A stretch of 63,817 bases of DNA, filler included, from Lenisia limosa (lineage: Eukaryota > Protista > Breviatea): the NCBI GenBank assembly GCA_001655205.1. It is 10 parts of 10 records of this genome, joined end to end, with 100 filler letters (N's around TTAATTAATTAA, not from the genome) between each part and the next. Parts side by side here need not be neighbours in the genome. Positions count along the whole stretch, not along the records: positions 26,449 to 37,092 come from LPNZ01007796.1; 9 more parts are not named here. One strand, given 5' to 3'. The position numbers were made by a program, and so were the translations under genes. The notes under the pieces are model-generated. The model saw only the letters and a list, made by a program, of their open reading frames with translations, made no database searches and had not been told where the DNA came from. This document shows positions 3,001 through 37,092 of the stretch, one piece after another (position 1 is the stretch's first letter; each line of letters starts with the position of its first letter).

Positions 3001-3288
3001 CAGTAGTAGCAGTTGTTGTGGGGGCAGCACCGAACATTGGAGCTGTGGTCTGGGAAGATAAGAAGCAGTGTAACTGCGGTGAAAGAAGAAAAACAACGTC
3101 GACAGACAACCTACTATCAAGTCCAACAATACTCAATTTGAACAAATTATACCAACCGTTGATGTACCAAAGAGCCCGCCAGTTGCAGGCGCGGCTGGAG
3201 CTGTCGATGCGCCAAAGAGGCTTGTTCCAGGAGCGGCTGGGGTTGTGGTGGAGGCTCCAAAGAGACCTCCTGCTCCGAAAGTAGCCAT
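1..3288 (-). CDS. NUP54: FG-nucleoporin Nup54/Nup57 (multi-exon, 3' end runs off window)
   Basis: ATG at 3288 (MATFGAGGLFGAS) followed by about 13 GLFG/FG repeats on small exons. C-terminal exons read AIASIESAFVGPSS, QHMFYNENP, TPSDTDDRLWHHA, VDGFDQLAHRNEMQ and TLIKLVQELQRKS, which match the Nup54/57 core pattern (YFYN...KP..D...W..A...GF.DL..R...Q). Confidence 0.85.
876..953. mobile_element. 78-bp Tc1/mariner-type MITE (family B), copy in Nup54 intron
   Basis: Palindromic CAGTGACCGGGA(T/A)AAGTC..GAC...GTCAAGACTT.TCCCGGTC(A)CTG flanked by TA on both sides. Same length as the copies at 35994 and 39823. Confidence 0.8.
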
Positions 3289-3610
3289 TATTAACTAATT
3301 AATTCACCTTATCCGCCTAATCTGCTCTTAGAGAGTTGCTAAGATGGATTCTCAAAAACACTTTACACCAACACCGCTTCTTGACTAACTTCCACCTAGA
3401 TTTTTACAGGCTAAGCGTCATAAAGGGCTTAAAATTTGAAGATTGAAGCATTATAAGTGAAAATCGAGAAATAATCGATAATTATCGATATTTATTTGGG
3501 TTCAGAAGAGCATGTTTATGTTTTATGAGGGGTTGTTGAAGTATTGAGGACTAGAGAAAAGAAGAAGAGTTCGATAGCAGACTGTTTTTGTTTTACTTCT
3601 CAAATTTACC

Positions 3611-4764
3611 ATGGTATGCGTCTCTGTTTCCTTCTCAACTGCTGCTGTCTTTATATTTCAAAATAAAATGACTTAACTGAGTAGGGAACTCGTGTTGCAG
3701 CACAGATCATTGTGAGCATTGGCCAGATTATCAGCAAAGCAGTTGTTGAAGGCTACAAAGGAGCCCTTGCCAGTTTGCAGGGATTTGCACCTAACTCAAT
3801 GTCGGATGCAATATGGCATATTTTCCATTGTTTGGTGTTCCCTCATCTCATCTCCAGATGCCCAGACTGGTCTCAGAGCAGCTGGTCCTCGTATCAAGAT
3901 CTCTGTGAGCTTGGCAATATTTGGATTTTATGGAACCATATAATTGTTGTTCATTTGAACCTATATTTCCTGATATATTTTTCTAGGTTTTCTCAATGTC
4001 TTATCATTTTTAGGAAGCTGAAAAGATCTTGGGTGTTCGAGTTGCTGACTCTTTGAAAGACATTGAAGCGGTTGGCGGAGGACACAGTATGATATAAAAA
4101 AACAATGAGTCAGTGTTTAAGTCTGGGAGAGCATTTCTCGGGAACCCGTCATTGAGTTATATTAGAATGACAAAACTTGTATACTCTTTCTGCTTTAACA
4201 ATACTGACCATGCCTGTAGAAAGCTGTGTGTATTCTCTTTTAAATTGGTGCTGCAACCTTCCACTACTTTTGTTAAATTACATATCATAAACATATACTA
4301 TATCTATATATATGCACATTCATACAATTATAGTGTACTGTAACATTAATTACCCGCAGAAATACCTAAGAATGATGGACAACAATTCAGAAGAAAAAGG
4401 AGGGTCATTTTACTTACAGTCAAAAGTAAGAGGGTTGCGTGGACGCACACAAACAACCGAAATACGTTCAACCTTCCAGTTCCTCGCTGATTTTGCAGGA
4501 TTTATCTTCTATACTTGTGATTATTTTCTCTGCATGATGAAAACATACATTTTCTCATTGAATTTTCTGGTTTATGTGATATGTACTTAGTTTCTTGCAC
4601 CAGTACCAGTTGTTTCTATTCTTGCTTTCTACATATATATATTCTTGTCTCATTCAATGGGAAGACTGATATTCTAGATGTTCCGGGCATACGAAGTTTT
4701 TGAGCAAGAGCATGGCCAGAGTGGGCCTGTTGATGACTCTGAAGACCCGAAGCCCCAGGATTAA
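3611..4764 (+). CDS. PAM16: Mitochondrial import motor subunit Pam16/Tim16 (multi-exon)
   Basis: Spliced exons read M|GTRVAAQIIVSIGQIISKAVVEGY...EAEKILGV...KYLRMMDNNSEEKGGSFYLQSK|MFRAYEVF, including the diagnostic GGSFYLQSK motif. TAA at 4762-4764. Confidence 0.93.
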
Positions 4765-5005: not shown

Positions 5006-8000
5006 CTATTGCTCCGCAATGCTCATGGCAGGGTCCTTGGAGTCAGCTTCATTTATAATCTCGCCTGCTGCTGCGTCTGAAAAATTGATAAGGATACAAA
5101 TTACTGTAGGGTATTGCCTCAAGCATACCTTTCTCTGATTCTTCAAGTGTGCTACTGTTGTCCGAATTGGGCAGATCATCAAGATCGCGCATTAACGCCT
5201 CCCTTACGTTTGCTAATGAGTTAAAATGACATGTAAAAATTAATAAATTTCCAAAGAAAGCCAAGATAGTAATACATATCACATTGAACCGCTGTGCCTA
5301 GACACAAACAGGTAGAGATATTCAAGAGAAATTTCTGGATTGGCACCCTGCTTTACAGATATCTATACTTAACAATGTAGCAATATGTATAATATTATTA
5401 CTTGACGGAGTTATTAATTTCAATCTTCAAGACCTACCCGCTTCTTTGAGCTTGATCAGGTCGATTTTCCCATCATCCCCAGTGGGGATCATTTGGATAA
5501 TCTCACTGATCTAAACTGTCAGTTTAGGGCAGTTTCAATAGAGAAATGAGAAATGAAAGGAGTTTTTGGCCAAAGCAGTTGGCACCAGACACAAACAGCT
5601 TTTCCTGTGCCTCCCCATAGTGTGATTTCAGAGCATAGTCCGCATCCTACTTGTCCTTTTGATCTTTCCTCCTTCAACATTCGAATTGCTGTTCCAAGTT
5701 CCTCTGGAAGGGAAATAGGTAATAATGCGTTACTTGAGATTTCAACATTTTTGACCGAAAGGCCTAATAGGTACCGTTGCCTCTCTCACCAACAGTAACC
5801 TTTCCGTCCTGGTTGACATTGATCAGGTTAAGCCCTCGACTGATACTGCTGTCTATTTCTGTCATTTCTTCCCCGAGGCGCGTAAGTAGGAACTCAAGTC
5901 GTCTTGATAGCCTGGAATATAATAAAAAAAAAACTGTTTTTTTATGGGAAACGGAAAATATCAATACCGATGATGTGAATATTAGCGTTCAGATTGTGAT
6001 TATGGGGGNNNNNNNNNNNNNNNNNNNNNNNNNNNNNNNNNNNNNNNNNNNNNNNNNNNNNNNNNNNNNNNNNNNNNNNNNNNNNNNNNNNNNNNNNNNN
6101 NNNNNNNNNNNNNNNNNNNNNNNNNNNNNNNNNNNNNNNNNNNNNNNNNNNNNNNNNNNNNNNNNNNNNNNNNNNNNNNNNNNAAGAGAAAAACTACCCT
6201 CGCTGTGCAGTATTTTAACATATTTTAGCTGGAAAACAAAACTAAGATGACTCTCACCATGCTGCTTGGTGTCCTGGCTACTGTTGGGGGATACATCAGA
6301 AAAGTGTATTTCTTCCACTTCGATGGGCTGAAGATAAAGATAAACCACATAGGTCAGAAGAAGAATAGGGGGGGGGGGGGATCCTTGGCCGGAAATACCG
6401 ANNNNNNNNNNNNNNNNNNNNNNNNNNNNNNNNNNNNNNNNNNNNNNNNNNNNNNNNNNNNNNNNNNNNNNNNNNNNNNNNNTTAAATTTAAAGTACGAT
6501 ATGTACTGTAATATTGATTATAAAATAAATCTTACCAAGGAAACCTCTTCCACAGAAGGCGCAATGATAGAATCAACAGTTCCTGGTAGGGCTGGATCGT
6601 GAGTAACATTGAGATTCAAGGGAAAACATATGACAAAAGCCTCCCCATCATGGTTGGCTTCATGAAATATCGCTGTTCCAGCCGAGCTCTTCTTTGACAA
6701 TTTGAACAGACCTCCATATACATGTTAATCCCCATATGGTCCCTCCACCCATACATGGACTCGATTTTGTCTGTTTCTTGAGTCGCTCAGTTGAGTCCTT
6801 CACAATTTCATTGGCCCTCTCGTACTCCAAACGAAGGTTCGCCAAATCTGCGCGTTCCTAGAGGGGATGAATCCAAGCATCAACAATTATATTGAATACT
6901 CATTAAAGATTCGACAACTAATTAAGAAGAACACATACCCTCTCCCATTCATACCTCATCCACAGCGCTTTCTGATGCCAGGATCAAGACTGCCTCCTCT
7001 GCCTCAGCCAGGTCTTTTGCCTTGATCCGCTCAGATTCGGAGGGTTTAGGCTGCTCATCAGCTGAGGGTATTTTTACTAGAGAATCAGAACATGCATGTG
7101 GTAATTCGTAAATCCAACTGAATAATCCAATAAGACATTCGGAAAATAATTCAAGTCATTGGCGGTAAGATAGACTTACATTCATTCTCTGTACTTGTAA
7201 TGGAAGGAACAGTGAAGTTAACATATGTGTCCTAAAAGTGTAAAAAGGGAGCCAAACGCATATCGCACATTTGCAAGGTTCAGACCTTGTGTAGATCAGT
7301 GAGGTATTTGTCCTGTGCTTCTTGCTCAATAAGCTGGGTCTGATTGAGTACAGATGTCAGCATTCGCTCCGAAGTTGCTGAATTTCACAATAAGAATAGA
7401 AAATAAGACTGATGCCGAATTTGTCACTGAAATGACAGTAATTGTAACTAAAACAAATACTTAACACGATTGTGTGAATCAACCAGTTATATTTTCCATA
7501 TTATATGATATATTCTAAAAGTAGACTTCAAATAGATGGATTTAGGAGAGAATGCGCAAAGAAAGCACCCCACCAACAAATAGAATTCTTGTAGGTAGTT
7601 TTGACCTGGTTTTTGGCTACTTCAGCCTCAACTTCTTCAATAACTTCACGCGACATTCCACTTAATGTTACACGCAGCGCCTCCTCCTGGTTGTTGGTGT
7701 AGATGCTGGGGGGGAGGGGTAATTTATATGAATACAAATTCTACACCATTTAATTAACAAAAGACAGCGGAAATAAACAATACTATATGATATCATATAA
7801 TATACTACCAATATGGAAAACCATTATTCAAAGAATCTCACACTGTTGTTACCTGCTAAACGTAAAAATTCTGGAGAGCAGTAGTAATGAGATGGAGACA
7901 CCTGCTTGGCTCAGGTCCAACCACTCAAGGAGTTGCCGTCTGAGCACGGCCCGTCCTAGGTTTGAGAAGGTATTTTCACGAGCCGCATATCCCCCAAAAA

Positions 8001-10641
8001 GGTCCCTTCAGCACTAACCTCGTTGTGATTCGAAGTTCATTCCTCTTGCCCTATTAGCAGCTTGAAGCTCACTAAAGGAAACGAGTCAACTCCCTCGAAA
8101 ATTATCATCTAGAGAAGTGTAAAAATGACTCATGATGCAGCTGCAGTAAATAACCAACGCGATCAATTATTATCATACCCCCCATTCCTCCCCAACCCTA
8201 TCATCCGCCTTGATACGTCTGACTTTGTGACGTAGCTGGAACCGCAAAAACGCGTCAGTTCCATAGGNNNNNNNNNNNNNNNNNNNNNNNNNNNNNNNNN
8301 NNNNNNNNNNNNNNNNNNNNNNNNNNNNNNNNNNNNNNNNNNNNNNNNNNNNNNNNNNNNNNNNNNNNNNNNNNNNNNNNNNNNNNNNNNNNNNNNNNNN
8401 NNNGATTTCATCTCTATATATGTAATTGTTTTTAGATCGTGGCAAAAGTCTCACTACAGAGAATTATTAACAACTTTTCACCCAGTCTCAAGACTATATA
8501 TCCTCACCTGAATAATTGTGACAGAGACAAAATTTCATCGGTCGTAACAGCTTCTCCATTTTGAGTCTGTTTCATTAGCAATGGATAAAGAAACTGAAAG
8601 GGCACTATGTACCCCAACAACCTTCACTATTCAAAGAAGCTTTAAGATAAGAACAACCATCTCCTCACATTATATCATATAAAAGTAAATAGATATGAGA
8701 AATAAAACAAGATTTTCTGGCCGAAGCCGTCTACACCATCACATTGTCAGAGATATAGGATTATATTAATAGTATTAATGCACCCAATCATTTGCCTACA
8801 ACTTTGTGCACACAGTTTTCTGTGTGCCTCCATAGCAATGAGAAATAAAAAACCAAAGTTGTATCTAAAGATATAATACATATACATTGTACATAAATAT
8901 ATATGATACATATCATTGCATATAATATGCATATTATACATATCATATAGTATATGATATGTATTGTTATACTTTAGATATATCCGATATGCATATACTA
9001 GTACATAATATAGGCGCACAGAGTTGTTAGGCAAATGATTGGGTGAAATAATATTAACTATAATCCACTATCTCTTATTAAAGTGATGGTGTGTTTCGGC
9101 CAGATACAACCTTGATATATTTATCGATCACATATTATATCATGCTCACCTTACGCATGAGTGCTTTGAATGAGTCTGCATCCGGGACTTTTCTGTTGAC
9201 CAGTTGCGACGCAAGGTCATTGAAAGCGTCCTAAGCTATGAGAGATGCAGTTTGGAGAAACATATGTATATTCTTCACAGACATTAAGAAAGCGTGCCAT
9301 TTCGATTTTGACTCGGAGGGACCTTTTAAGATCTGCTTCTTTCTTGAGTTGGTCCACAAAAACAGATGGTAGCATTTGGGGGAACATCTAAGGGATGAGT
9401 GAATGAGCAAAAACACACAACTAGCAACTGACCTAGTAACATATCAAAGGTGTACAAAGGGGTGTTATGCCGAGTGAAATAATGTACTACTCATTAAAAC
9501 ATTGAAGAGTAATAACGATCCGAGCTAACCTTGAGGGCGAAAGGCAAAGCAAATTCGAGAAAAGGAACCACGACAAACACTGCAACCGGTACAACACGAA
9601 AGATGTCACTGGTCTGGGGTCAGTTAGACGCCGGTGGAAACAGTCTAGGAGACTTCATGTAATTAAGCCCACCCCCATACCACTCGGTGGAGAAGTTTAT
9701 GCTCCCTTCTTGTCAGTGTTTGCCCTAGGAATTTGATATTTTTCGGTTGAAAATCTCATTGTTATTCAACTCTTTAACAAATACTAACCTTTGATCATGC
9801 GACGAAACAGCTTGAAGGCAATTTTCGTATCAGCGCAGAGGAGTTTCATACCTGTCACAGTATGAACCGTGACGTCCTTGATCTTCGAGAGGGTCTACAA
9901 GATAAGTAGGATGGTTTTATCTTCCATCTGAAGGATTTGAATCAAAAAACCGAAAACAAGACTAACCTTTCTGAGAGGCTTGGAATCATTGATTTCTGGG
10001 TTGTTACCAAAATATCATTCAGGCAAGAAATGATTCTGATATTTACAAAAATCAATTGTCATAAAAGGGATATGCCAAACGAAAAACCAACAATTGTGCT
10101 CCCCACTATTCAGCAACGCATCAGTTAAATAAGGCGGAAGGACTTCTACCACTGGTACAGTACTTTCTGTTGCAGCAGCACTTTCTTCAGGCTGGGGGGA
10201 TTCTTTGTCATCCTCAGCATCTTGAAATAATTAAACGGCTGAGAATAATTTGTGTTGAAAATTGCCCTTTGAAGCTAAGAAACATAACAAAACGGCTAGC
10301 TGTGATCCCCTCTCCTCACCAGTTCCAGAAAAGTATGAAAGTCTGAAATGTCTCCCCAGAAGCGAAGCCCGAACTGTTTGCTACAGGTATTGAAATTAAA
10401 TTAATTGTTTTTATCCAATGAATATTTTGGAAACATAACATCAATTTTTCAAACCCATCCCACCGAGGCAACATTTGTTCTCAATGCAGAAAAAGCCAAG
10501 CCTCTAGCAATTTTGGGTGAACTGAAAATATGAATTGAAGACAAAATCAGAATTGCCAATGGACTCCTTTCAAATCAATTCCCTCCAAAACACCCACGAT
10601 TTCAGGAGTCCTTGAGTGGCTGGAAGGAAGAATCTTAGCAT
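5006..10641 (-). CDS. LETM1: LETM1/Mdm38 mitochondrial inner-membrane protein (about 20 exons)
   Basis: Exons read GMKLLCADTKIAFKLFRRM, SDIFRVVPVAVFVVVPFLEFALP, MFPQMLPSVF...SLRVKIEMARFL, YGTDAFLRFQLRHKVRRIKADDR, ELQAANRARGM, LRRQLLEWLDLS...SLLLLSR, plus EF-hand-like NVNQDGKVTV and GDDGKIDL. Probable presequence MLRFFLPATQGLLK; start and stop inferred. Confidence 0.92.
8695..9113. repeat. ~150-bp TA-associated interspersed repeat (family A), here two inverted arms around an AT-rich spacer in a LETM1 intron
   Basis: Arm 8695-8831 (atgagaaataaaa...ggccgaagccgtctacaccatcac...cccaatcatttgcctacaac..tgtgcacacag..gcctcc) is the reverse complement of arm 9013-9113. Related copies near 24884, 35920, 37695, 38133, 39298, 48877, 57683. 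Confidence 0.8.
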
Positions 10642-11078: not shown

Positions 11079-12693
11079 ATGGGAAAGAAATCTATTGCTA
11101 AGTCTGACTCTAAGAGTAAGCTGGGAAGTACACTTGTATTGCTTACCTTGTTTTGCATTTTTGTCATGACTTTGATTGATGTATTGGCGTATATGGCTTA
11201 TAAATTGTTTCCGTTGAGAATTCAGAGCGATTTTTTTTAACTTTTTTTAGAGAAGGCCGTCAAGGCCGCTCCCGTCAAGGAGTCCAAGAAGGCCTCTAAG
11301 AAGTCTTCCAAGAAGTCTAAGAAGGAAAGGTAATTTTGACCAGTTGTCATGCTTTTTTTTTTTCTTTACCGACTTCTGGGCTTATTTCTTTGTCAAGGGT
11401 TTCTGTGATCACAATACCAATGATTTTGAAGAGTTTATTTCCTAATGAATGTCGGCCTTCCTATCCTGGCCTTGGTTGTTCTGTTTACCTTTGAATGGGC
11501 TTTACTTTTTTCAGCAGCTCTGATGACGAGTCTTCCTCGAGCGACGAGTCTTCTTCTGATGATTCTTCCAGCGACTCTGACTCCTCTTCTGAGGAGGAGA
11601 AGAAGGCTGACTCTTCCAGCTCTGATTCTGATTCTTCTGATGACGACAAGAAGAAGTCTGACTCTTCATCCGATTCTGACTCTGATGATGAGGAGGAGAA
11701 GAAGAAGTCCGATTCCTCCAGCTCTGATTCTGACTCCGACTCTGACAAGGAGGAGGAGAAGAAGAAGTCCGATTCTTCCAGCTCTGATTCTTCCGACTCT
11801 GATGACGACAAGAAGAAGTCTGACAGCGACTCTTCATCCGATTCTGACTCTGATGATGATAAGGAGGAGAAGAAGGAGGTATGTTTTTGTTGATGATTTT
11901 TTTAAGTAGCTTCAGGCTCTTCCTCTCCCTTCTTGCTCTATTTTCCTTAACAACCCAGGAGACTCCCGCTAAGCGCCCCCGCGAGGAGGAGGCCGTCGTT
12001 GAGGAGGCCGCCCCCGTCGAGAAGAAGCCCCGTTACTCCGCTGATGGCGAGAAGTCCGCTCCTTCCTCTACCCTTTTCCTTGGAAACCTTTCCTTCAAGG
12101 TTAGCAAAAGTTTCGTCTCCTTCAAATTTCTGAGATCATTTCACACCTTAGGTTGACGAAGACATTCTCCGCTCCTCTTTCGCTGAGGCCGGCAAGGTTG
12201 TCTCTGTGCGTCTCCCCTGCTTCGAGGACGGTCGTAAGAAGGGCTTTGGATACGTCGAGTTCGAGGACGTTGAGGCTGCCAAGTCTGCCATGAAGTGGGA
12301 CCAGACTGACTTCTACGGACGCCCCATCCGCATGGATTTTGCTGCTGCTCGCCGTAAGAAGGGTTCGACGTTTTTGGTAGCTGAACTCATATCTTTTCTT
12401 TTTTTTTATATATTTACGGAACCCTTTCCTGTTGAGCTGCATTCACCCTCGCAGCCGATCGTGGAGGCTTTGGCGGTGGACGCGGTGGCGGACGTGGTCG
12501 TGGTGGCGGATTCGGTGACCGTGGCGGCCGTGGAGGCGGATTCCGTGGAGGCCGTGGCCGTGGCGGCGGATTCGGCGATCGTGGAGGCCGTGGCCGTGGC
12601 GGCGGATTCGGAGATCGTGGAGGCCGTGGAGGTGGATTCCGTGGCGGCCGTGGCGGCATGCAGCCTTCCGGCTCTTCTTTCTCCTTCGACTAA
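11079..12693 (+). CDS. Nucleolin/Nsr1/Gar2-like nucleolar protein (acidic Ser-rich N-terminus, RRM, RGG tail)
   Basis: MGKKSIAK start, long S/D/E tracts with KKK, RRM with RNP2 TLFLGNLSF and RNP1 KGFGYVEF, then GGFGGGRGG repeats ending FSFD*. Confidence 0.9.
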
Positions 12694-13139: not shown

Positions 13140-16100
13140 CCCTCACGTGGCTTTGGCAGTCCGTTTGGAAGGTACCTGTTAATTATTAAAATACNNNNNN
13201 NNNNNNNNNNNNNNNNNNNNNNNNNNNNNNNNNNNNNNNNNNNNNNNNNNNNNNNNNNNNNNNNNNNNNNNNNNNNNNNNNNNNNNNNNNNNNNNNNNNN
13301 NNNNNNNNNNNNNNNNNNNNNNNNNNNNNNNNNNNNNNNNNNNNNNNNNNNNNNNNNNNNNNNNNNNNNNNNNNATACCTGAAGAGAGGGGTCACAATGG
13401 GGTAAACAGTACAGAATATTGTATTTGTTGTGTTAGTATCACTGAGAAATGGCGTACTTGGTCCTTCCCATGCCCCTTCTGATGACGATGACTGTGTTGC
13501 TTGGTATGGCGTTTGACTGGATCCATATAGCCTGACTGTAGGGGAAAAAGGGGTAAATAATATGAAAATTTCAACTAAATATGATTGGGGTTTCCAAACG
13601 ACTGGGGTAAAATGGCAATAAAAGTTGAAAGTTCGGTTGTAGAAAACAGTTGAAAGTTAAATTATCAATGGCATTCCAACCTTTTCAGAAGCTTCAGGGT
13701 CAGCTCTAACCATTTGGTCAGCAAGGCCCAGAGCCATGCGAATTCGAGCATCCACATCCGAAGACGATGTCTGAAGAAGAGGATTAACTCACATGAGAAT
13801 AATATGAATGAACAAGAACAATGAAATATAAAGCAGTTGGAGGATCGAATAGGTCATCCCTGTACCTTTGTCTTTGGAGTTGCTTTGCTTTGTCCGTCAT
13901 GGGACATGGTGGTGTAAGATACTTGGTGATCCGGAGAGGGCCTCGGTCGAGCCTACAGTATATCAAATTGGTTATTCTAAAAATGAGAAAAGATATCGGA
14001 TTTTGATTAATCAAAAAGGGTCCTAAATCCAGAACTGAAAGTGAGATGAATGACCACAAAAAATGTTCATGTTGTCACCTCTAAGTTTCTCGGAGTGTTG
14101 TAGGCAGAACCAGGCCGACTATGTGGTGGTGACTGGCTTGTTTTACCAGGGCCTAAAGCAATGAAGTGAAGTTGACTATTATTACTAACCAAAACGGAAG
14201 GGAAGATGAGCATATAAACAAACAAAAATAAAGCTTACGCTCGCCAATTGGGGGGTTCAATAGAGCGTCAGCATAAGGAGGCCGTAGCATTGGGGGGCTG
14301 ACTGAGCGTTTTGGGGAACCTGGTGGGGGTGACTATCCAATATCAAATATATATGTGATATTATCATTTTTCCAACCCCCAACACTATTGTTTTCGCTTA
14401 TTTTCTTTGACATTGTCAATTTGCTGCTTCTGTATTTCTCTACTGTCCCCAAAAATTGAAAACATCAATAAACTACATTACATAGATAGAAATGAGAAAT
14501 AAAATTAGGTTGTATCTGTCCAGCAAAGGATTATTTTACTGATTAAAGTAAGAAATACCTACACTTGAAAATCATGACATATATCCTGCTCCAGACCCCA
14601 TGATCCAATACCCCTCATGGCATGTATCTTATTGTTCGGTAGCTGGTGGAAAAATCTTCAAAAAATAGAAATTTTAACTGTCTTTTTTCTTTTGAAATGA
14701 ATAGGAAAAAACCCACCACTTCGTGACGTTGTCTTTTTGATGTTCATTGGCCTGGAGTAGACCTAAGGGAATATAAACGCTTGATAAATGAAACAGTAGT
14801 TTAATATGGGGTAAGTAAAATAGTATTTGTGACGACTATAACAAATAACAATGTGAATGTGCACCCACCTTTTGCGGAAAGTTATGGACGGGGTGATGTC
14901 TACAGATTTGTGAAGGCGAAAGGAGAGAAGAAAATAAATATAAAAGCCACAATAAAAACAGGTTGCGCCAGGTAATACCTTGGACCAGGAAGGGGCATTT
15001 CATCATCCAGGGCAGCAGCAACCAGCTCAGCTGTTGTGAGTTGGGAAAGGTCTCGATGTGGTACTGATTGCTCCGGTGGAGACTGTGACAGTGAGAACTA
15101 CTAATTCTCTGGACTACACAAAGAGCATTTATCAGAAGATGATGTTGCTGTAAGACCCCCCTCATTATGACTAACACTTAGCTAAAATCCAGCCTACATC
15201 GTATCTCTGAGTTGGAAGAGGCGGCCTCGCGGATTTTGTTTCCTGGGACTGGGTTATCAGTTGCAGGGTAGTTTATATGCTTTGTAAGCTTCAATACGTG
15301 AGAAACGAAAATTGTTAGGTATTGGCAATTTCAAAACTATAAACGCTCGCCTCCGCCCTTGCCATTATTTTTAGGATTGTTAGAACTTGAGCCACATTTT
15401 GAAATTTCGCCCTACAATCTGACTAATTTCGCGGGTTGCTGCTTCAGCAACCACCAAGTTCTCTTTGACACTCTACAAAATAAGTTGATCATTTTGTCCA
15501 ATATTATTTTGGGTACAGGAAAGAGCTGCAATTTCACTTCTTGAGCCAAGAATGTGAATAACCGAAACATCAACTCACAAGCATTATTGCCCCCCCCCCN
15601 NNNNNNNNNNNNNNNNNNNNNNNNNNNNNNNNNNNNNNNNNNNNNNNNNNNNNNNNNNNNNNNNNNNNNNNNNNAATGCAAGGCGTAATCGGTAGGATTC
15701 TTCCAAACTTGCGGGATCGCGCGGGAGTGGCTGTGATAGGAAATCAACACAATCCGAACTCAGTGTTCCGTGAATCAAGTGATGAATCGAGAAGAGTAGT
15801 GAGTGTAAAAACAATAGAAAAAGCCCCCCCTCCCCCCAAATACCCTGGGTTCCTGTGGAAGAGTTGGGGTTTGCGTATAGCGGTAAGGCTCAGGCGGTTT
15901 CACGACAGGCTCGGGACTGGTGGCGGTTTGGGTTGAGTTGGTTTGTGGGATGGGGTCAGTTCCTGGGGGGTGGAGGTGAGAAAAAATTGGGATGTGTACA
16001 AGTGAAGATATTGACCCTCCTCACCTCGAGACTTCATGATTTTTTCCGGAGGGGATGGCACTTCAATATCGTAGGAAATCGTAGTGCGAGGTGGGGGTGT

Positions 16101-26448: not shown

Positions 26449-29395
26449 CCTACCGAGAGTGGAGTTCTGGATGTGAACCATGTCGAACTTGCCGAACATG
26501 CGGGAGAATGCAAAGCCGGTAATGACACTGAATGGTTAATTCAAAAGATGACAGACACCAAGATCAAAAAATCAGTCGGCTTGGAATCCTAATGTACAGA
26601 GTTGATTTTGGACTTGCGTTTTGTATTTTATACCCCCCCCCCCCNNNNNNNNNNNNNNNNNNNNNNNNNNNNNNNNNNNNNNNNNNNNNNNNNNNNNNNN
26701 NNNNNNNNNNNNNNNNNNNNNNNNNNNNNNNNNNNNNNNNNNNNNNNNNNNNNNNNNNNTACCTGGGGAGGGGGGTGAGGAAAATACTATTTTTATTTTA
26801 CGTAGGGCTTCACTTCGGTTCGAAAAAAGAATGAATAAATCCTCAAAAACTATCGATATTTTCTGGTATTTTCCGAACCAAAATGCACTATTTATACAAC
26901 ACCTTGAAAGATACTACATAGAAAACCATGACCCNNNNNNNNNNNNNNNNNNNNNNNNNNNNNNNNNNNNNNNNNNNNNNNNNNNNNNNNNNNNNNNNNN
27001 NNNNNNNNNNNNNNNNNNNNNNNNNNNNNNNNNNNNNNNNNNNNNNNNNNNNNNNNTTCTTGCTTTTAAAAAGTCCCCACCGATCATTGCGAAGAGGTCG
27101 GAAACGTAGTTGGAGCCGTTGAGGTCACCGTAAGCTGAAAGATGTTAAAGCGGTTATTTACATATTAGTCCAGAAAAATGTCAGCAAACTGCGTGGGGTA
27201 AGCAAAGGTGATATTTAGGGTTCCTACGGTCCCAAAAAGACTGAATCTCTTGATGATAGACATGGATATTTTAAGGGTTTTTTCGGGCCGTAGGGAAGCC
27301 CCGTTTAAATGGCTTCAGCCAGGTACAACCTTTTTATGTTCTTCTTCTATTATATATACTACATATATACACTGAACGGGATAAGTCTTGACCGAATTGC
27401 TTTTTGATTTTCCACCCCGTCACTATGGGGTTGGGGGTTGGTAAGAATGAAAAAATTTAATAGACAGTATAGAGGTGGGGGGGGGGGGANNNNNNNNNNN
27501 NNNNNNNNNNNNNNNNNNNNNNNNNNNNNNNNNNNNNNNNNNNNNNNNNNNNNNNNNNNNNNNNNNNNNNNNNNNNNNNNNNNNNNNNNNNNNNNNNNNN
27601 NNNNNNNNNNNNNNNNNNNNNNNNNNNNNNNNNNNNNNNNNNNNNNCGCAGTTTGCTTACCCCTCCTCAAGCAGTTTGTTTACCCCTCCCCCCACGCAGT
27701 TTGCCGTCCTTCTTGCGGTGAGCCAGAATGACGGAGGCAGCCAGGCCGAAGTATGCACCGAATGTGTGGACCGCAAGGGAGCCACCAACATCAACCATCT
27801 GATCGGTCACTCACGACAGAACAATAAGGACAGAACAATAAGGACAGAAAATTAAAATATTTAAATGATCATTCATGACAGAGAAATATAACCTGTGGAA
27901 CGGTAATCCAAGAATAATACTAGGCTAAGTGACACTCTGGTATATTGACGATATGAATCCAGCAAACCTCGAGTTCGTAGGTGGTAATGTAGAAGTTGAA
28001 AGCGTAGCAAGGCATTTCAAGGACGCCAAGAATGAGGAGCTGAGGGGCGTAAAACGAAGAAAATTTATGAAACAAAAAAAGCCCTGTTGGTATCGCTATA
28101 TTTTTGGTTTCCTTGATATATTGAATTTGGATTATTCTTGTTCGCAAAAACACTATCCATTGCCCTTACGAACCTGAGAAAGAGAGACCTTGCCAAGGAG
28201 AGCACCGAAGGTGACTGCAATATGAGATAAATCAGAATGTCTCTCCCCATAATAAATAAAAGGACTTCGTGTAATCATAATGTTGAAACTAAGTGACAAA
28301 AATTTGAACCATGATAATAGGTCTCACTTCACATTTTGCAGTTATTTGTTCACAAAACACGGAGCCTTGAATAATAGAGTATCAAAGCCATCCATTCCCC
28401 NNNNNNNNNNNNNNNNNNNNNNNNNNNNNNNNNNNNNNNNNNNNNNNNNNNNNNNNNNNNNNNNNNNNNNNNNNNNNNNNNNNNNNNNNNNNNNNNNNNN
28501 NNNNNNNNNNNNNCGGTCCGAAAAATAAATTTTAAATATCGATTCTATCGAGGATTTTTCGAAAAATTCATTCTTTTGTAGTGCTCTAATTATACCCCCC
28601 CTTACTCATGCCAACGGCGGCGGCGAAAAGACCCTCAATTAGGTAGACAATGGAGAGGGGAATCTTGACCCAGTGGTCGTTGTGGTAGTTGTGTACGGCT
28701 CCCATGCAGAGCATTCCGACCTGAAACGTTATTCGCATGGTCAAAGCGTGAAAGAAAAAAAGACCCATAACATAATGAAGATTTAAAGCTACCCCCCCCC
28801 CCTACAAGGATAAAGATGACGGNNNNNNNNNNNNNNNNNNNNNNNNNNNNNNNNNNNNNNNNNNNNNNNNNNNNNNNNNNNNNNNNNNNNNNNNNNNNNN
28901 NNNNNNNNNNNNNNNNNNNNNNNNAGGTAGCCGAAACTACCCAGGTGGTGAGTCACACTCAGGAAAAATATCCGATTGTGATCAGATGTGAAATTGTGAA
29001 AACTTCAGCTCCGATCCAAAAGAAAGAAAAGTCAACAAGCCTCCACCAACCCAATGAAAATCATGACCGCGACGTCAGAGAAGAGACTGTAACGAGTGTT
29101 TTGGGTACCGACGGTGGCTGTAAAGTCATTACGGTCCCGATACTCCTCTAACCAACCATCAGTCACAGATTCATAGTCAGTGAAGAGCTGGAAGGCAACA
29201 ACAAGAGCGACGTAGAACGCCATGAAAAGAGGCATGAAGATATCCTGTCAAATGAGAATTTAGAGCACTAAGCATCGATAAAGTCCGAGTTAATGTCTGT
29301 AAACTCGATATATAAATTGAGGAACAAACCATGGTCTTCTTGGCGGTGGAAGGCTTGACCTCCTTCGTAAGCTCAACAGTTGCAGAGTCAGACAT
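26449..29395 (-). CDS. Rh-family ammonium transporter (3' end lost at linker)
   Basis: Exons read YSLFSDVAVMIFIG..GSFGYL, TFGALLGK, PQLLILG, DVGGSLAVHTFGAYFGLAAS, SDLFAMIG, GKFDMVHIQNST. These are hallmark Rh motifs, including both conserved His residues. Confidence 0.93.
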
Positions 29396-29689: not shown

Positions 29690-31950
29690 CTATGCACATA
29701 GGGAGCTCGTTGGCAGCCATAGTTGCCAGCGCAGTGAACAATGAAAATGAAGTTCAGATCAGGTTTGATGTCGTGATTGTTGTTTTGTTTCATTCTCAAG
29801 ATGTTTGGCTCAAAACGCGGCAAGATGGTTCTATCAAGTCAGCTTGTCAAGGTTTTTATCCGAGGCTGATGATATGCTCGGAGCGATCCTTGACTCCAAC
29901 ATTGCAGCCTTTGTCAAAGAGCAAACGTATTAGGGCTCAAGCCTGATGTATTAGTGCGAACAGTATTTATCTCGACGCGCACTGGATGGCAGAGAACGGC
30001 GTCACAGCGATCTCCCAATTCAACTTCTTTTTCTCTGGTATCTTGATGACCTCATGCTTTAGATTGAAATGGGACACGCCTGAGAAAGGCTGGGTGGACC
30101 TCCTATCGCACATCACGAGGCTTGACATTATGACTTGCCAATGGTTTGTTCGATGCATAGTTGGAAGACAAATGATGGTTGCATTAATATTCTACTTTTA
30201 TTGAATAATATGTCTGATTAGCAAGATGGTGTGAATGGCTTCGGCCAGATAAAACATTGTTTTATTCTCATTCTCTAAATAATTAACCGCGAGTGTTTTC
30301 TGTTGTGACCGCGATAGGGCTGACATTGTGTCATTGGGAGAGGAGTATCGCATGAGCGGCTTTGCATTGTTCAATGACGAAACTGCTGGGGTAGGAACGG
30401 AACTGTCGAGTGGTGCTGCAGAAGCGACTGGCCTGGGCTTCGTTTGTTTTGTTTTGATCAACCCTTGTGTGTTTTCAGCCAAGAGTTGATTTTGGGCTTT
30501 ATTTTTTGTTGCATAAATTTTCCATTCCCCCCTCCCCCACAGCCAAGCGGTTCTTATTTGCAGCAAATCCAATATATTGGTGTATTGGAGGATAGCTGGG
30601 GTATGAACGGTTCTCATTTCAATTATTTGACCATTTTCACACTATTTCCACGCAGTAATGGCTTGGTGTTTCTCAATTTATTTTCCACCTAACAAAGATA
30701 CATTCTCGCATAGAAAATATCTTTAATTGCTACTTTAACAGTTCCTTTTAATTTGCATTTTCAAAACTTTATTGTCTTTTTTCATTCACTANNNNNNNNN
30801 NNNNNNNNNNNNNNNNNNNNNNNNNNNNNNNNNNNNNNNNNNNNNNNNNNNNNNNNNNNNNNNNNNNNNNNNNNNNNNNNNNNNNNNNNNNNNNNNNNNN
30901 NNNNNNNNNNNNNNNNNNNNNNNTTCACATTCTCGCAAACCCTCACCAAACTCCTGACAAGAGCCCTCGTGATGCTCATTCGTTATCGACCGTCTCCCCT
31001 CATTGAAGAGTGTGCTTGTTACAGGAAGTACATTCTATAAATGCAAAACAATACATAGAGATTAGGGCTTCACTTCGGTTAGGAAAATACCGACAAAATA
31101 TTGATAGTTTTCCAGGATTTATCGGGAAATTCCGTCTTTTTTCGAACCGAAGTGAAGTCCTAATAGGGATGTCATAAAACAAAATCTCACTATACGCATG
31201 CGTCACTCATTGCACTTAATACACAATGGCTTACAATTAACTATAATCTGTTTGCGTGAATACGTCATAGAAAATCCTTGGATGCAAACGGTTTCAAAAG
31301 CCGTGTGTAATACCGATATTTATCAAGTCAGTCTGTTTTGGAAAGCTTACCACTGACTCGACAGGTGTGTGAATAAGATCTACCGAATAAAGCAGTACAA
31401 CGCTAAATGGACCAAAGACCCAACTGAGATCTACCAGGTAGGAAAGGAAGGGGATTGGGTAGGAAAGGAAGGGGATTGTTTTTGAACTTTCTGCAATTTT
31501 GTTTTGTTTTTGGAATTAATTGCTTTTTTTTTGGAAAAAAAGTGTCTAAAATTTTTCTGAACAATGGAACCCCCTTGAAATTTTAAAATTAATCTCAAAA
31601 TTAATTACGCGGAGTCCTGGATAATTCGATGAATAATAATTCAATCTTTTCGATTTTTATTCATGGACAGAATTTTTGATCATTTTATTCCACTGGTTAT
31701 TAATTTTCTGCAACTGATTACTTGTTGTTCAAAACATTGATTATGTTGAAAACTTGTGATCATCTCTCACTATTTAGGTAAGCGGAGTGTTGAAGTGTAA
31801 GAGATGGATTGTTTTTTTCTCCTATTGAAAATATCACTTCCTTTCTTATTCGACTATGATAGTGTAAGGATATTGAGGTCAGTATTTTGAAAGCCAGGAT
31901 TGCAGTGTCAGGAGGACAACCATGTTGGACGATTGTGAATAGGGTTAGAA
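29690..31950 (+). CDS. Hypothetical multi-exon gene
   Basis: Several AG/GT-bounded exons (SIYLDAHWMAENGVTAISQF, KWDTPEKGWVDLLSHI, IYRIKQYNAKWTKDPTEIYQ). No family recognised. Confidence 0.4.
31063..31162. mobile_element. 100-bp hAT-type MITE (family C)
   Basis: Terminal inverted repeats TAGGGCTTCACTTCGGTT.../...AACCGAAGTGAAGTCCTA flanked by an 8-bp near-duplication atagagat/atagggat. Confidence 0.85.
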
Positions 31951-31989
31951 CCCATAACACCTACCCAAAAAATCCACACAAAATCAAGG

Positions 31990-34296
31990 AAAGCACATAG
32001 TATATCTATTTGATAAATGATCAGACTTCCTAAGCATCCTAATGGACTTCCATCCTCAACGTTTCATCTTCTCCTCCTCTGTACAAGTCATATTGGTCGT
32101 GATGGTGTGGCGGAAAGAATGGACGGTGAAAAGGAGGGCTTTTTCCTCAGACAGACCAGTTTTGACCAAGTCAGACCGGAGAATGTCATACATTGCTCGA
32201 ACTCTCAGCAGGCTACAGGATGGCCAAACGAACAAGGCACGATCCACGTTCTTGTCGTTGTTGCGTGACTGTTCGTTGAGGGCTAATTGCGGCCACTGGG
32301 CAAATGGTCTTTGAGGCCGTTGGTCGGTACATCAAAGAGGCTCATCTTGGCTTGTGACCCGGCGGGGAGGGTCCAGGGTGACTATCCCAGTTCATTGAGG
32401 GTTCCTCAGGAGGTCAGCCCACGAATCTAGGGCGGTTCTAGCGTGATGGGACACGTTTTGAAGTGCAGGGGAGTGTGGGAAAAGGCTAATCTCATTGTGA
32501 AGTGCCTTTGTCAAACGACGGCCAACTGGGGTATCCCGACCAGCCTAGGCCAATTTGTTCGAAAGGGACTGGAGGGACTTGATAGACTGGGGAGCATGGG
32601 TGGCAATGTTAATGTGATGGAGATATGCGGCAATCTTGTCCTTGGGGAGACGAGCGGTCATAGTCGGGTGTCAATTTCTCCCCCAGAACCGTCATATTAT
32701 GAGTTGAAAAGGACACCTTGTCCTCTCCGTAGGGGATGCCGACAAGGGTCCAGAAAATGAGAACTGACGCGAGGATGTAGCGACCAAAAGATGCAGTTTC
32801 GGCTGTGCCAAAAACGTCGTCAAAGTAAATTGAAATATACCATTTCTCTTCTGAAATCATAGAATCCAGGTTCTTATTGAGATAGTGAATTTGACCATGG
32901 AGGAGTTTATCAGGGATGGGTATTGACGAATTACACCCTCTTTGACCCCCTCTTGTTGATTTCAAGAGTGGCGCGGGATATAGCGTCAAAGAGGACAGGG
33001 CAGTTTTGGAACCCAAATGGGAGGTAATTGTACCGATAATGCTTCTCATCTGGCAAATTACAGCAGAGCCAATCTTGACTTGTTGGGCGGACAGGAAGTA
33101 GGTTGAAGGCACTCATCATATCAGCAGAAAATAAGAAATGATCGGGCCGTAAGAAATCTTTAAGGCCAGTGACTCGATCCAGCAAAAAGGGGCGCTTGAG
33201 AGTGTCGTTAGTGAAACGAGAGCCGTCAAGGATTTGGTCTTGTTCAAATGAGGGATTTCTTTGACGACAACTCCAACGGGATTGTAGTTGGCGTACGTTG
33301 GGGGAATCAATAACTCAGTAACAGTACCCGCAACAACAAGTTCTTTGTATGTGTCAGAGAGAACCTTAGAATTCTCTTGTGCCTTTGGCCAGTTTCGGAC
33401 GTGGAATTTGGTAGATGCGGAATCTTTCATACCAATGTCGGCACCTTTCCATAAAATAGCCGACACGATCCTCAAACCCAACCTTTCTCATCTCCTCGTC
33501 CATATAACAGGGTTGATCTTGTGGTGAGGAGAGGGGCAGGATTCAGCTGGCGGCTCCAAGTAATGCAGCCTCCTCGGGGTCGGCAGGGTTGGTGCGGAAG
33601 TGGTGGTATGTATCGTAGTCCGCCATAGAGACGTAGAGGGAACGGTCCTTTGTCGCACGAGACCCTATATAGGGTTGGATCCTTTATTCACTTAGTTTCT
33701 ATAATATACTCTGTATCAGTCTTCAGTTGATCATAATTTAGCATCTCGCATAGTCATTAAAAAACAGATTGTTAATCACTTGATAACTCAGAATCAATGC
33801 ATTTATCCAGACTTAGGGTGGATTACACCCTGTCCAAGGTTCTTCTTGGAACAAGCTTTTACCGAATGCCCAGGCTTTTTACAATGAAAACAGACTGCCT
33901 CTGCCGTTTGGCCTGGGGCAGCCACCGTCTGCGTTATACGTCGCACAAATGGGACTGTATGAGTTAGAGATGAAAATCGCACGGGACAAACGTAGCAATG
34001 ACATGAAGGCATAAAAACACATCGAATCAAAACAAGTTCTTACCGGAGTGGCGAGGGATCTTCTGGAACCTTCNNNNNNNNNNGGCCTGAGGAAGAGCCT
34101 CATCGTCAGAGTCGGCGAGTTCTGAAACGGAGTCTTCTTCTTGAGATACTTCTTCTTCTTGAGCGACCTCGTTGACCTCCTTGGTACGCTTAGCGACCTT
34201 CTTCTTGGCCTTGGGAGTCTTATTCTTGGCCTTTTCTTCTTGAGGATGAGGGGGGGAGGGGGGTGCAGCACGCATATTTCTTCCCCATTTGTGCAC
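31990..34296 (-). mobile_element. Decayed DIRS/Ngaro-like tyrosine-recombinase retrotransposon (gag-RT-truncated YR)
   Basis: Gag with CCHC knuckle CFHCKKPGHSVKAC; RT motifs NPVGVVVK, FSADMMSAF, YNYLPFGFQNCP, YFDD, LGEIDT..MTARLP; YR C-terminus ICPVAA, LFVWP, HSFRH..GWKS. Contains in-frame stops and frameshifts. Confidence 0.9.
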
Positions 34297-34499
34297 AAGT
34301 AGCTCAAAAAAATTTCAAAAGAGAAATTGTTATTCAATTTTTTTGTTAAATCTCAGATGAACTGAAACAGTCTCTTAACTTTTTATGAGATTAAAATTGA
34401 TTATGTAATATGTTGCTGCTAGCATTGTTTACACCTCTTTACCTGAAATAAAACTATCATTAAACACACTGCTGCATTTAAGATTATTTTAGGCTCAAA

Positions 34500-37092
34500 C
34501 TTTTATCTACGAAGCCCTTGCTGCGAACAGCGAGTCCCCCTCCCGCGAACACTTTGACTGGAGAAACAAACAGGCGGTAGGCAGGAGACGGTTGTGAATT
34601 GTTATGCTATTATATCTTCGTTTAATACATTTTCCATTTTTACTCCCTTCACCCTTTTGTTGTTCTCAACCTTTGTGTGTTGTCAGCCAACATAATTGAT
34701 TTTGGGTTTTTTCTGTTTCATACAGTTTCCCTTTTTAATAATCGATACGAATGATTCATATTATATGCATATCATGTACTACTTTGATATTATGCATATT
34801 TTATACTATATATGGGATCTTTGGATTTTAATTGACCACCCAGGTCGGGTCGAACCGAGCCGTGCCGCCGCCGATGCGATCACACTCCTTCCAACACCCG
34901 GCACGCACCTCTTCTGGCCGACGGCGTTCTCTGCCCAGTGGCGAGTCCTTGAATAGCAGCGGTAGGGAGGGGGAAAGAAGAAGGGATGTCAATCAACCCT
35001 TATCCACTAGTGATATGATCAAATGACCGACTTTCGAGGCAAAATAATGAACGAAGATAACACGAGGGTTCATCCCGAGTGTATCAGAGTATCATTGAGA
35101 CTTGTCGGTCAATTATATCATACGAGTGGATATGAGGTACCATATCACTGCGTGGAAAATGATAGTTCACAAGCGTGAAAATGATCCAAAAGGTGATATG
35201 ATTATTCATTTGTAGGGGCAAGTCCTTGCTCCCACAACTAGGGCTTCACTTCGGTTCTAAAAAGACTGGCAAAAAAATCGATAGTTTTCGAGGATTTGTC
35301 GATAAATTCAGTCTTTTTCAAAACCTAAGTGAAGCCCTAGGTACAACCCATAAAACTATACCTCTGTTCAATTCTCCTGACCCCTCTCCCCACACACCAC
35401 CACCACAATTTGACCCCCCAGACTATCAATTTGGGTTATTTTTGTTTCATAAATTTTCCAATTTAACCCCCCTCCCCCAGACTATCCCGAAAACCACCTT
35501 GTTGCCTCTATACGACCCTCGGCTCTCACTGCTCTCCCCGGCCTTGGTGGACATTATCTCGAGCTGTCGTACCCGCGTTATTGCAAATGGAATGCTGTAG
35601 GCGGCGTGGTATATGGCTTCCCGACGTTCCCAAAACAAGACTGATTTTTCCGAATTTTTTTATATCTAATACATTTAAAATATATGTAAATATGTACATG
35701 GGGATACCATAGTATTGTTATTATCTCCATGTTATCGCAAATGAAATGCTGTAGGTCAGGGTGTCATTGGCTTCACTTCGGTCCAAAAAAGACCGGTAAA
35801 ATATCGATAGATTTCAAGAGATTCAGACTTTTTTTGAACCGAAGTGTAACTCTTGTCATTCATGTCAAATATTGGAAGGGCATACTTATTAATACTGGGG
35901 TTATCCTTGGTATGTATCAGGCCGAAGCCGCCCACACCATCACGCTTATAAGAGATATTGGATTTTTTGCCTGATTAATAATTATATTACATACCGTGAC
36001 CAGGATAAGTCATGACCTATATTCCTTGGGAATTCAGATAGGAAATCGGTCAAGACTTCTCCCAGTCACTGTACACACATCACATGTGTTTATAACCCAA
36101 TAGCCCGGTCAACATCTTCAGCTATTGTCAGTCACAAACTGCCTCATCGAATAATTGATTATTACATAATTATTATACTTAGGGCTTCATTTCGGTTTGA
36201 AAAAACGCATGAAAATATCGATATTTTTCGATGATTTATTATCGAGAAATTCAGTCTTTTTTGGGACAGTAGGGAAACCCTTTTAATAATACATGTATTT
36301 ATAACCCTTTTAAAGCCCTATCATCCTTTCGATTATTTTACATTCATAAGATATATGATGTATACAGTGTATACAATATACTGTATATTTTAGTAACGTT
36401 GTAGTCTGGGCTACATCTTCAGATGTCCGTCACAAACTGGAGCCTCATTCACCTTGATGCTGTGTATGTTGGGCCCTGATGCTGTGTATGGGGTGTTAGT
36501 GGGGATCTGGAGGTAGCAATCTAGTCGTTTATAATATTTTCGAAATCGAGTCACATGACTTGGATTTTTAATACACTAACACCAGTCGTTTCTTTCTTAT
36601 TGTACTCTACTTTTTTTATGTTTTAGCAATGGAGTCAGTAACTGCGCCTGGTCACACGACTTCAATCATTTTTACATTATTTGGGTATGTTGTGATTTAA
36701 TCATTTTTACATTCTTTGGATATGTTGTTCTGATCCCTTACAACACAACTATAATTCCATTTTTGCTCAACCATTTTTGCTGAACTCACACAATCCCTCA
36801 TGGTATTATTCCAAAACGTAACCACATTCCATAACCTATTAGTACTAGAGCTTCACTTTCGGTTCAGAAACAGCTGTAAAATATCGATATTTTTCGAGGA
36901 TTTATCGAGAATTCAGTCTTTTTTTGAACCGAAAGTGCAGCTCTAATCAGTACACCCCTCCACATTCCATAACCCAAGCAGTACTCCATAGCAAAGCAAT
37001 CTGTCCGAGTCCTCTCTCGCGATGACGTGGCGCTCAAATGCCCTTCCATCGGCGCGCATTCAGTCGTGTCGGAGCTGATGAATGAAGTGCGC
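34500..37092 (-). CDS. Hypothetical multi-exon gene with MITE-laden introns
   Basis: GC-rich AG/GT-bounded segments near 36960-37090, 35490-35640, 34830-34960, 34510-34560. No motif recognised. Confidence 0.3.
35239..35339. mobile_element. hAT-type MITE family C copy
   Basis: TAGGGCTTCACTTCGGTT...GTGAAGCCCTA; flanks cccacaac/ggtacaac (5/8 match). Confidence 0.8.
35994..36071. mobile_element. 78-bp Tc1/mariner-type MITE family B copy
   Basis: TA|CCGTGACCAGGATAAGTC...GACTTCTCCCAGTCACTG|TA. Confidence 0.8.
36846..36945. mobile_element. hAT-type MITE family C copy
   Basis: TAGAGCTTCACTTTCGGTT...AACCGAAAGTGCAGCTCTA with 8-bp flanks attagtac/atcagtac. Confidence 0.85.

Follow-up and report, generated by a model that had tools for sequence, protein, structure and literature searches.

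Several kinds of retroelement are known to carry introns in their genomic copies. In Ogre, a Ty3/gypsy element of legumes, a short intron in the coding region is kept in the genomic copies and is spliced from part of the transcripts, which leads to translation of the downstream coding sequence (PMC6317226), and for BARE1 and copia the unspliced RNA is the template while the spliced RNA alters gag/pol translation (PMC3735527). Penelope-like elements likewise keep introns after retrotransposition (PMC8557442). For the DIRS, Ngaro, and PAT elements (definitions of Ngaro and of tyrosine-recombinase, YR, elements are given in PMC4157794 and PMC13465315), we found no description of introns in the full-text literature searched, a scope outside which the classic reviews lie. 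Here, we analyze a decayed element copy on the minus strand of a stretch of Lenisia limosa DNA (assembly GCA_001655205.1; 63,817 nucleotides (nt), ten parts joined end to end; hereafter, the window). Judged by its domains, this element is a divergent YR retroelement with a Ngaro-like layout, and its gag-like gene is interrupted by two intron-like spacers.

The element family shares with Ngaro a gag-like open reading frame (ORF), followed by reverse transcriptase (RT)/putative RNase H and then the YR on one strand, with overlapping ORFs and no methyltransferase domain. It differs in that split direct repeats are not demonstrable, the RT is very divergent, and its gag contains intron-like spacers besides a CCHC knuckle. 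A zinc-finger motif also occurs in the Gag of YR retroelements of the Pat1-like DIRS type (PMC4157794), but PAT and DIRS encode a methyltransferase after RT/RNase H, and no Dam-like match was found here. Ogre follows the same logic as we propose below for the second spacer, yet it is a long terminal repeat (LTR) element with an integrase (INT), its intron lies between gag-pro and RT-RNase H-INT, and its splicing was shown experimentally, whereas the element described here is of the YR type and its candidate intron lies inside gag and is predicted from sequence comparison. In BARE1 and copia, splicing removes or frameshifts pol so that only Gag is made, whereas here it would extend Gag to the pol ATG. 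Penelope-like elements, in turn, rely on target-primed reverse transcription with a GIY-YIG endonuclease, the intron conserved among them sits in the 5′ untranslated region/pseudo-LTR (pLTR), and most of their ORFs are uninterrupted; they are not related to the window element in RT or integration enzyme.

To compare interruptions between copies, we used a set of five decayed copies: the one in the window, one on each of the contigs L001 and L002, and two on contig L003, which lie on its plus strand (5411-9480) and its minus strand (500-3170) and are denoted L003(+) and L003(-). All five have the same layout, and all five carry stops or frameshifts. The L001 copy is a fuller member of the subfamily of the window copy, with an extra 1164 nt between window positions 34011 and 33935, and without 159 nt that the window holds (33696-33538). 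L002 and L003(+), with a mutual nucleotide identity of 73-82%, form a second subfamily with an RT that is 41% identical in amino acids to that of L001 (protein P0001), and L003(-) represents a third. The L003(+) copy has an inverted piece (7453-7645) and deletions of its own, and the L003(-) copy is without the knuckle block. The gag-like gene and the start of pol in the window are laid out as follows.

34044..34296, minus strand: exon 1, the 5′ ORF, K/E-rich and then acidic, ending ..RFQKIPRHS (from the ORF list; L001, L002, and L003(-) have homologous 5′ ORFs)
33955..34043, minus strand: 89-nt unit with a conserved donor G/GTAAGA, the remainder a putative deletion remnant (comparison with L001 and L002)
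33829..33954, minus strand: exon 2 with the CCHC knuckle at 33892-33851 (Pfam zf-CCHC, E = 1.6e-3; tblastx)
33665..33828, minus strand: candidate intron 2, 164 nt, phase 1, GC content 0.32 (homologous spacers in L002 and L003)
33497..33664, minus strand: exon 3, the gag C-terminus, GSRATKDRSLYVSMADYDTY.. (70% amino-acid identity to L002)
32612..33512, minus strand: pol start (..MDEEMRK..SAILWKGADIG..) followed by RT pieces spread over at least three frames (Pfam RVT_1, E = 8e-4; phmmer match to P0001)

The spacer behind the knuckle (spacer 2) runs from a donor CAGG/GTGTAA at 33828 to an acceptor TATATAG/GG at 33665, which bears out the claim of a preliminary description of this DNA that a second AT-rich GT..AG insert follows the knuckle. 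Its GC content is well below the 0.52 and 0.59 of the flanking coding blocks (taking the spacers together, values of 0.32 and 0.405 compare with 0.50-0.59 in exons), and it holds stops in all three frames. Homologous spacers are present in L002 (3018-3133, 116 nt) and L003(+) (6530-6642, 113 nt), and the conserved frames were joined when 164 nt were cut at the homologous borders in the window, 116 nt in L002, and 113 nt in L003(+). Between subfamilies, identity amounted to 55% of nucleotides in exon 2, dropped to 40%, i.e., the background level, in spacer 2, and returned to 70% of amino acids in exon 3. The homology of exon 3 started right after the AG/GG of the acceptor, which reads TATATAG/GG in the window and ACACAG/GG in L002 and L003(+). 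Exon 3 is protein-coding, since its Ser codons (TCC/AGT) and Arg codons (CGT/AGG) are swapped synonymously between subfamilies, and it is not translatable alone, because no ATG precedes its conserved YVSMADYD and a stop closes the frame immediately before. The spacer 2 donor is GT both in the window (GTGTAA) and in L001 (GTTTAA). Taken together, this comparison of copies points to spacer 2 as probably a genuine phase-1 spliceosomal intron, with position and phase conserved across subfamilies.

The spacer in front of the knuckle (spacer 1) is short in the window. On the minus strand, 34043-33955 reads G/GTAAGAAC...CATCTCTAACTCATACAG/TC CCA TTT, with the GTAAGA donor, the CTAAC, and the CAG that the preliminary description had listed, and the 5′ ORF ends on its donor side with the codons ..TTC CAG AAG ATC CCT CGC CAC TCC G. 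Spliced translation gave RFQKIPRHS-VPFVRRITQTVAAPGQTAEAVCFHCKKPGHSVKAC.., that is, a product ..RFQKIPRHS VPFVRRITQTVAAPGQTAEAVCFHC.. that continues in frame to the knuckle, so the reported join of ..KIPRHS to VPFVRRI..CFHCKKPGH can indeed be reproduced. Four GT..AG pairs (40-400 nt, stop-free, leading from the frame of the 5′ ORF to that of the CCHC block) allow such a join; all of them use the single donor at 34043, and the 89-nt pair is the first of the four. The 5′ ORF is interrupted by a 10-N assembly gap (34074-34083), at which one related contig is six letters shorter, keeping the frame.

As an intron in its own right, however, the 89-nt segment did not survive comparison with the other copies. 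It is private to this dead copy, with 1179 nt in L001 and ~850 nt in L002 at the homologous place, and its first ~33 nt align well with L001, while its last ~46 nt are just 54% identical to L001. The frame into which it splices is not the conserved one either: between subfamilies, it is the ..SPICATYNADGG.. frame that is conserved, not the VPFVRRI.. frame. On this evidence, we read the 89-nt unit as a derivative of a ~1.1-kb deletion, whose CTAAC and CAG are probably former exon-2 sequence brought beside the donor by that deletion, because the only strong-donor in-frame solution in L002 has its acceptor ~21 codons further upstream.

The donor itself has a wider distribution. The homology of exon 1 ends at ..IPR.S or ..IPKK in three subfamilies, and the letters directly after it are GTAAGA (window and L001), GTGAGT (L002), or TATAGT (L003(-)). 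In L002, the donor TGA/GTGAGT (2036, phase 1) and the acceptor GGATAG/G (2822) provide an in-frame, stop-free join, which adds ~21 exon-2 codons upstream of the acceptor of the 89-nt unit; a weak similarity between L001 and L002 in those ~21 codons (VLLFYELYLSHP versus IILKSEMLSLHP) agrees with the L002 acceptor. Between the long spacers of L001 and L002, tblastx found no match beyond the knuckle exon, even at sensitive settings, although the flanking gag blocks align, and a Smith-Waterman shuffle test on the best pair of spacer-1 ORFs from these two copies yielded P = 0.11. A search of the long spacers for a hidden capsid exon returned no Pfam match, and the spacer ORFs displayed no protein-like features in the ESM Atlas. 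ORFs with a length of 50 codons or more account for 0.21 of spacer 1 in L002 (0.33 in shuffles), as compared to 0.99 of pol in the same copy. From these comparisons, we consider an intron to be the likelier identity of the long spacer 1 (~0.85-1.2 kb in the fuller copies).

The knuckle exon lies between the two spacers. The knuckle, CFHCKKPGHSVKAC, has the exact C-x2-C-x4-H-x4-C spacing, with a Pfam match that stays below the curated cut-off. Two tblastx blocks, SYSPICATYNADGGCPR and VCFHCKKPGHSVKACSKKNLGQ, fall into two frames in the window and into one frame in L002, where the knuckle block reads ..TPICKEFNSDAGSSRAACNHRQVCLNCKR, a stop, and GHPVKTC in a single frame. The frame taken previously, VPFVRRITQTVAAPGQ, differs from the conserved one; for the first half of the L002 block, the matches of the window and L001 lie in another frame (SPICATYNADGGCPR and ICSAFNADSGCSKA), and both copies have in common a +1 frameshift before the knuckle relative to L002. 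As a separate observation, a genomic contig at ~3-4 times the single-copy depth joins 34035 to 33681 and skips the 353 nt in between, which comprise the CCHC exon together with the greater part of both spacer 1 and intron 2; this joint is not a splice junction. The CCHC exon (33846-33979) itself had only single-copy depth in the genomic run. An element form that lacks the knuckle block thus seems to exist in multiple copies.

We propose that the gag-like gene would consist of three coding blocks parted by two noncoding, intron-like spacers. Without splicing, gag stops 7-10 codons past the knuckle in the copies read (after PKSG in both the window and L001), whereas splicing of spacer 2 would extend Gag by ~55 residues past the knuckle, up to a stop that overlaps the pol ATG. 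In three copies, this gag stop and the pol start overlap as ATGA (at L001 5600, L002 3291, and L003 6807), which suggests that pol is coupled to gag by termination-reinitiation. For spacer 1 of the window, the ~1.1-kb deletion would have left 89 nt of the intron and taken away the beginning of exon 2. The unspliced RNA would serve as the template for reverse transcription, such that the spacers persist, and only a share of the transcripts would be spliced for translation. For the family as a whole, we assign a probability of roughly 0.6 to this combination of two introns with an unspliced template. At somewhat short of even odds, and hence as a tentative proposal, active members may need both gag introns, maintained across subfamilies, with full-length Gag made from spliced RNA, splicing thereby coupled to the translation of pol, and the unspliced RNA acting as template, in a manner that is Ogre-like but of independent origin. 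An unusual mode of replication, one of the two options named in the preliminary description, does not follow, as an unspliced genomic RNA as template is enough, as it is in Ogre, BARE1, and retroviruses (PMC6317226, PMC3735527). The broader claim that this gag is split by introns stands in part: the interruptions are retained in independent copies and spacer 2 is conserved, but the 89-nt unit drops out.

A number of observations weigh against the two-intron model, and most of them would fit a gag without any introns, i.e., a series of separate small ORFs and coding sequence in decay, where spacer 1 would stand for a lost capsid-like domain and the stretch behind the knuckle for an intergenic gap. 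Suitable GT..AG pairs are numerous (five can join the knuckle to the next block in the window, and 11 fit spacer 1 of L002, where chance fits come easily), and the borders might be chance matches in dead copies; since such pairs are not rare, the fit of splice signals is weak by itself, and the weight comes from the comparison of copies. That comparison speaks for introns in that the frames join at homologous borders in three copies and the spacers are dissimilar while the flanking gag blocks align. At the place of the intron-2 donor, both copies of the second subfamily have GC in a poor context, and we found no GT donor that works in both L002 and L003(+). Both subfamilies have a stop shortly behind the knuckle, which is what one would expect of a gag with the nucleocapsid part at its end, but an intergenic gap at this place does not sit well with exon 3, which is conserved as protein from ~13 codons upstream of its only ATG, with a stop just before. 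For spacer 1, the phases disagree in the conserved frame (acceptor of the 89-nt unit, phase 2; donor, phase 1). The GC content of L001 spacer 1, 0.45, resembles that of the coding parts of this copy, and its ORF coverage is weakly in excess (0.91, versus 0.65 in shuffles; P = 0.04), a sign of coding that has no counterpart in L002, whose spacer is without ORF signal although pol is almost intact in the same copy. A T-rich motif ~25 nt past the donor, in the frame of exon 1 in three subfamilies, could mean that coding continues there, and in-frame similarity possibly extends ~13 codons beyond this "donor." At the level of RNA, one set of polyA RNA contigs contained no contig on the sense strand of the element and no spliced RNA from it, and an intact ORF cannot serve as proof of splicing, as every copy is dead. 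Weighing these points, we regard an intron-free gag as unlikely, albeit worth serious consideration.

Two other explanations were considered. Both inserts could be accidents that befell the window's dead copy after its insertion, as might be suspected from the 89-nt form being unique to the window (~1.18 kb in L001, ~0.85 kb in L002), from two further differences of ~1.1-kb scale and a private 1-nt difference at 33558, and from the single-copy depth of the CCHC exon in the genomic run. For spacer 2, this idea is refuted by its presence at the same place in L001, L002, and L003(+), and the donor motif of spacer 1 is found in L001 and L002 as well. Because spacer 2 and the spacer 1 donor thus occur in relatives, the interruptions predate the window copy, with only the shortening of spacer 1 being private, and accidents as the source of both inserts are quite improbable. 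The comparison of genomic copies called for in the preliminary description hence gave a split answer, with spacer 2 recurring in L001, L002, and L003(+) and the 89-nt form confined to the window. Alternatively, the copies might not have been retrotransposed at all, but rather stem from gene duplication at the DNA level or from a Crypton-like YR DNA element equipped with an RT; introns would then persist for want of an RNA intermediate. YR DNA transposons with predicted introns do exist (PMC13465315), neither DIRS-type inverted repeats nor Ngaro-type split direct repeats are demonstrable here, and every copy seen keeps its spacers, with no processed, spacer-less copy among them, although with just five copies the lack of processed ones says little. 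The order RT-RNase H-YR, together with the gag-like ORF and the ATGA overlap, is a retroelement layout, and the copies occupy unrelated surroundings and show the decay of transposon copies, all of which makes an origin without retrotransposition very improbable.

The assignment to the YR retroelements, which the preliminary description had made, was supported by a YFDD box in the RT (32827-32816), by the HSFRH..GWKS of the YR, and by a sister YR ORF that exceeds the Pfam cut-off. This ORF, a YR homologue of 171 amino acids at L003:1020-505, matched PF00589 Phage_integrase with 33.8 bits (cut-off, 27.1), and a second homologue at L001:7750-8148 matched PF00589 with E = 7.6e-4. The Pfam matches in the window itself were weak (RVT_1 and zf-CCHC, as listed above), its YR fragment had no Pfam match, and RVT_1 matched the window piece, as well as P0001 (E = 6e-3), below the curated cut-off. 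The feature and structure neighbors of P0001 in the ESM Atlas were RVT_1 clusters, including Dam+RVT_1+RNaseH, i.e., a DIRS-type pol. RNase H motifs (TDAS..G.G, INVLE/D, and AD.ASR) were recognized by eye in L001 6674-7137 and L002 4363-4827, with no Pfam match. Only ~150 nt separate the end of the RNase H-like pieces (~7137) from the N-terminal start of the YR (~7292) in L001, and no methyltransferase (Dam-like) domain was detected by Pfam between the two. Inverted terminal repeats, as in elements of the DIRS1-like kind, could be found in none of L001, L002, and the window. The L001 copy is flanked only by a direct repeat of 54-135 nt (3519-3655 and 8857-9000) that is part of a very abundant dispersed repeat, and the A1..B1A2B2 arrangement of Ngaro could not be demonstrated, with no B repeats detected. 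The resulting layout, in which a gag-like ORF with a single CCHC knuckle precedes RT, putative RNase H, and YR, with no methyltransferase domain among them, is the basis on which we class the window element as Ngaro-like.

Relatives of this lineage are few. With a 107-amino-acid RT piece of the window as query, an exhaustive phmmer search picked up P0001 as a single close relative (69% identity, E = 3e-35) and P0032 as a more distant one, while the remaining matches were generic RTs with 23-39% identity. A word-based protein search with the window's 84-amino-acid RT piece had no match; with P0001, it returned P0001 and P0032 only, and with P0001:10-130, two more fragments, P0061 and P0062. Although the searches spanned billions of proteins, all four relatives came from contigs (L001-L004) of a single ENA assembly, and scans of metagenome, viral, and prokaryote-genome contigs with the RT alignment found no relative. 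The YR lineage is thus rare in public data. L001-L004 derive from the same or a very close organism, because the dispersed repeats of the window and its miniature inverted-repeat transposable element (MITE) also occur in those contigs. The L004 contig has a 245-nt fragment (2168-2412) that is 89% identical to the start of the RT in the window copy. P0001 (L001 5607-6551) had been called with TGA read as Trp, and under the standard code it contains three in-frame TGA codons. We ruled out a TGA = Trp code: in the window copy, CGA stands in place of one of the three, which is a C-to-T change of the CpG type, and the remaining two fall where P0001 leaves the conserved RT frame.

In the window, the element copy is internally deleted and decayed, with frameshifts and stops, and extends on the minus strand from approximately 34485 to 31897. 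A blastn comparison with L001 was collinear from 34490 to 31897 at 69-77% nucleotide identity, and tblastn of P0001 against the window gave E = 1e-65; homology among the copies begins on the 5′ side at ..AAATGCAGNAGTGTGTTTAA, at ~34485. The overall extent, the distal parts, and the enclosing host intron are given below.

31897..34490, minus strand: degraded YR retroelement, comprising the gag-like gene, RT, RT thumb, and YR C-terminus (blastn against L001, tblastn with P0001)
32395..32670, minus strand: RT thumb/connection pieces, ..SIKSLQSLSNKLA, a stop, then AGRDTPVGRRLTKALHNEI.. (homologous to L001 6433-6689)
32324..32356, minus strand: deletion junction (blastn: 32356-32324 corresponds to L001 6730-6762, and 32329-31897 to L001 7877-8283)
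32000..32331, minus strand: C-terminal piece of the YR, containing HSFRH (32121-32107) and GWKS with an in-frame stop between them (homologues L001:7750-8148 and L003:1020-505)
31438..34492, plus strand: host-gene intron, GT..AG, enclosing the element (spliced polyA RNA contig)

The YR fragment reads HSFRH..MKR, a stop, and GWKS. Relative to L001, the window lacks ~1.1 kb inside gag and a further ~1.1 kb that contains RNase H motifs and the N-terminal half of the YR (L001 6763-7876, 1114 nt). In exon 3, the private 1-nt difference at 33558 shifts the frame, with other copies from the same genome having an extra base after this position.

The element is an antisense insertion within the intron 31438-34492 of an expressed host gene. 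A plus-strand polyA RNA contig links the exons 31365-31437, 34493-34576, and 34844-34961, and further host exons were found upstream (30980-31009) and from 35481 onward (plus strand); all four host introns are GT..AG, and the ORF is open across every join. The 5′ end of the element (~34485) comes within ~8 nt of position 34492, the host 3′ splice site. We considered and ruled out that the exon 34493-34576 is part of the element: the copies become homologous at ~34485, and the open host ORF runs on through this exon. At the other end of the host intron, a perfect 21-nt tandem duplication (GGTAGGAAAGGAAGGGGATTG, two copies, window 31437-31478) doubles the host donor site and supplies a second in-frame donor, 21 nt downstream of the donor at which the RNA contig is spliced. 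No known RNA family was found by Rfam in the window piece or in L001-L004.

Two abundant repeats were observed. The MITE family, palindromic and ~100 nt long (TAGGGCTTCACTTCGGTT...AACCGAAGTGAAGCCCTA), is present in the window at 26796-26885, 31061-31164, 35238-35340, 35766-35856, 36171-36264, and 36846-36945, as well as in L001, and reached a summed depth of ~30,000 in the genomic run, compared to 30-55 for unique sequence. The other repeat, ~140 nt long with a poly-G start and a depth of ~67,000 in the same run, occurs in the window at 34655-34745 and 30390-30545, in L001 at 745-825, 3519-3655, 8857-9000, and 13314-13385, and in L003 at 5362-5404, 9622-9723, and 11314-11473. It flanks several element copies, and the plus-strand copy of L003 is seemingly inserted inside one of its units. 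This repeat could be a preferred target of the element, or it could be related to the element's termini.

The window copy itself is dead and fragmentary, and the tidy-looking intron of 89 nt in it is best read as a deletion product; the significance of the locus would lie with the family. In an element that is copied through RNA, an intron in the coding region survives only if the spliced mRNA and the unspliced template are kept separate. If our reading of the two spacers is true, then the same intron solution would have arisen in another order of retroelements, that of the tyrosine-recombinase elements, and the ratio of spliced to unspliced RNA would offer a handle on how RNA is split between translation and replication.

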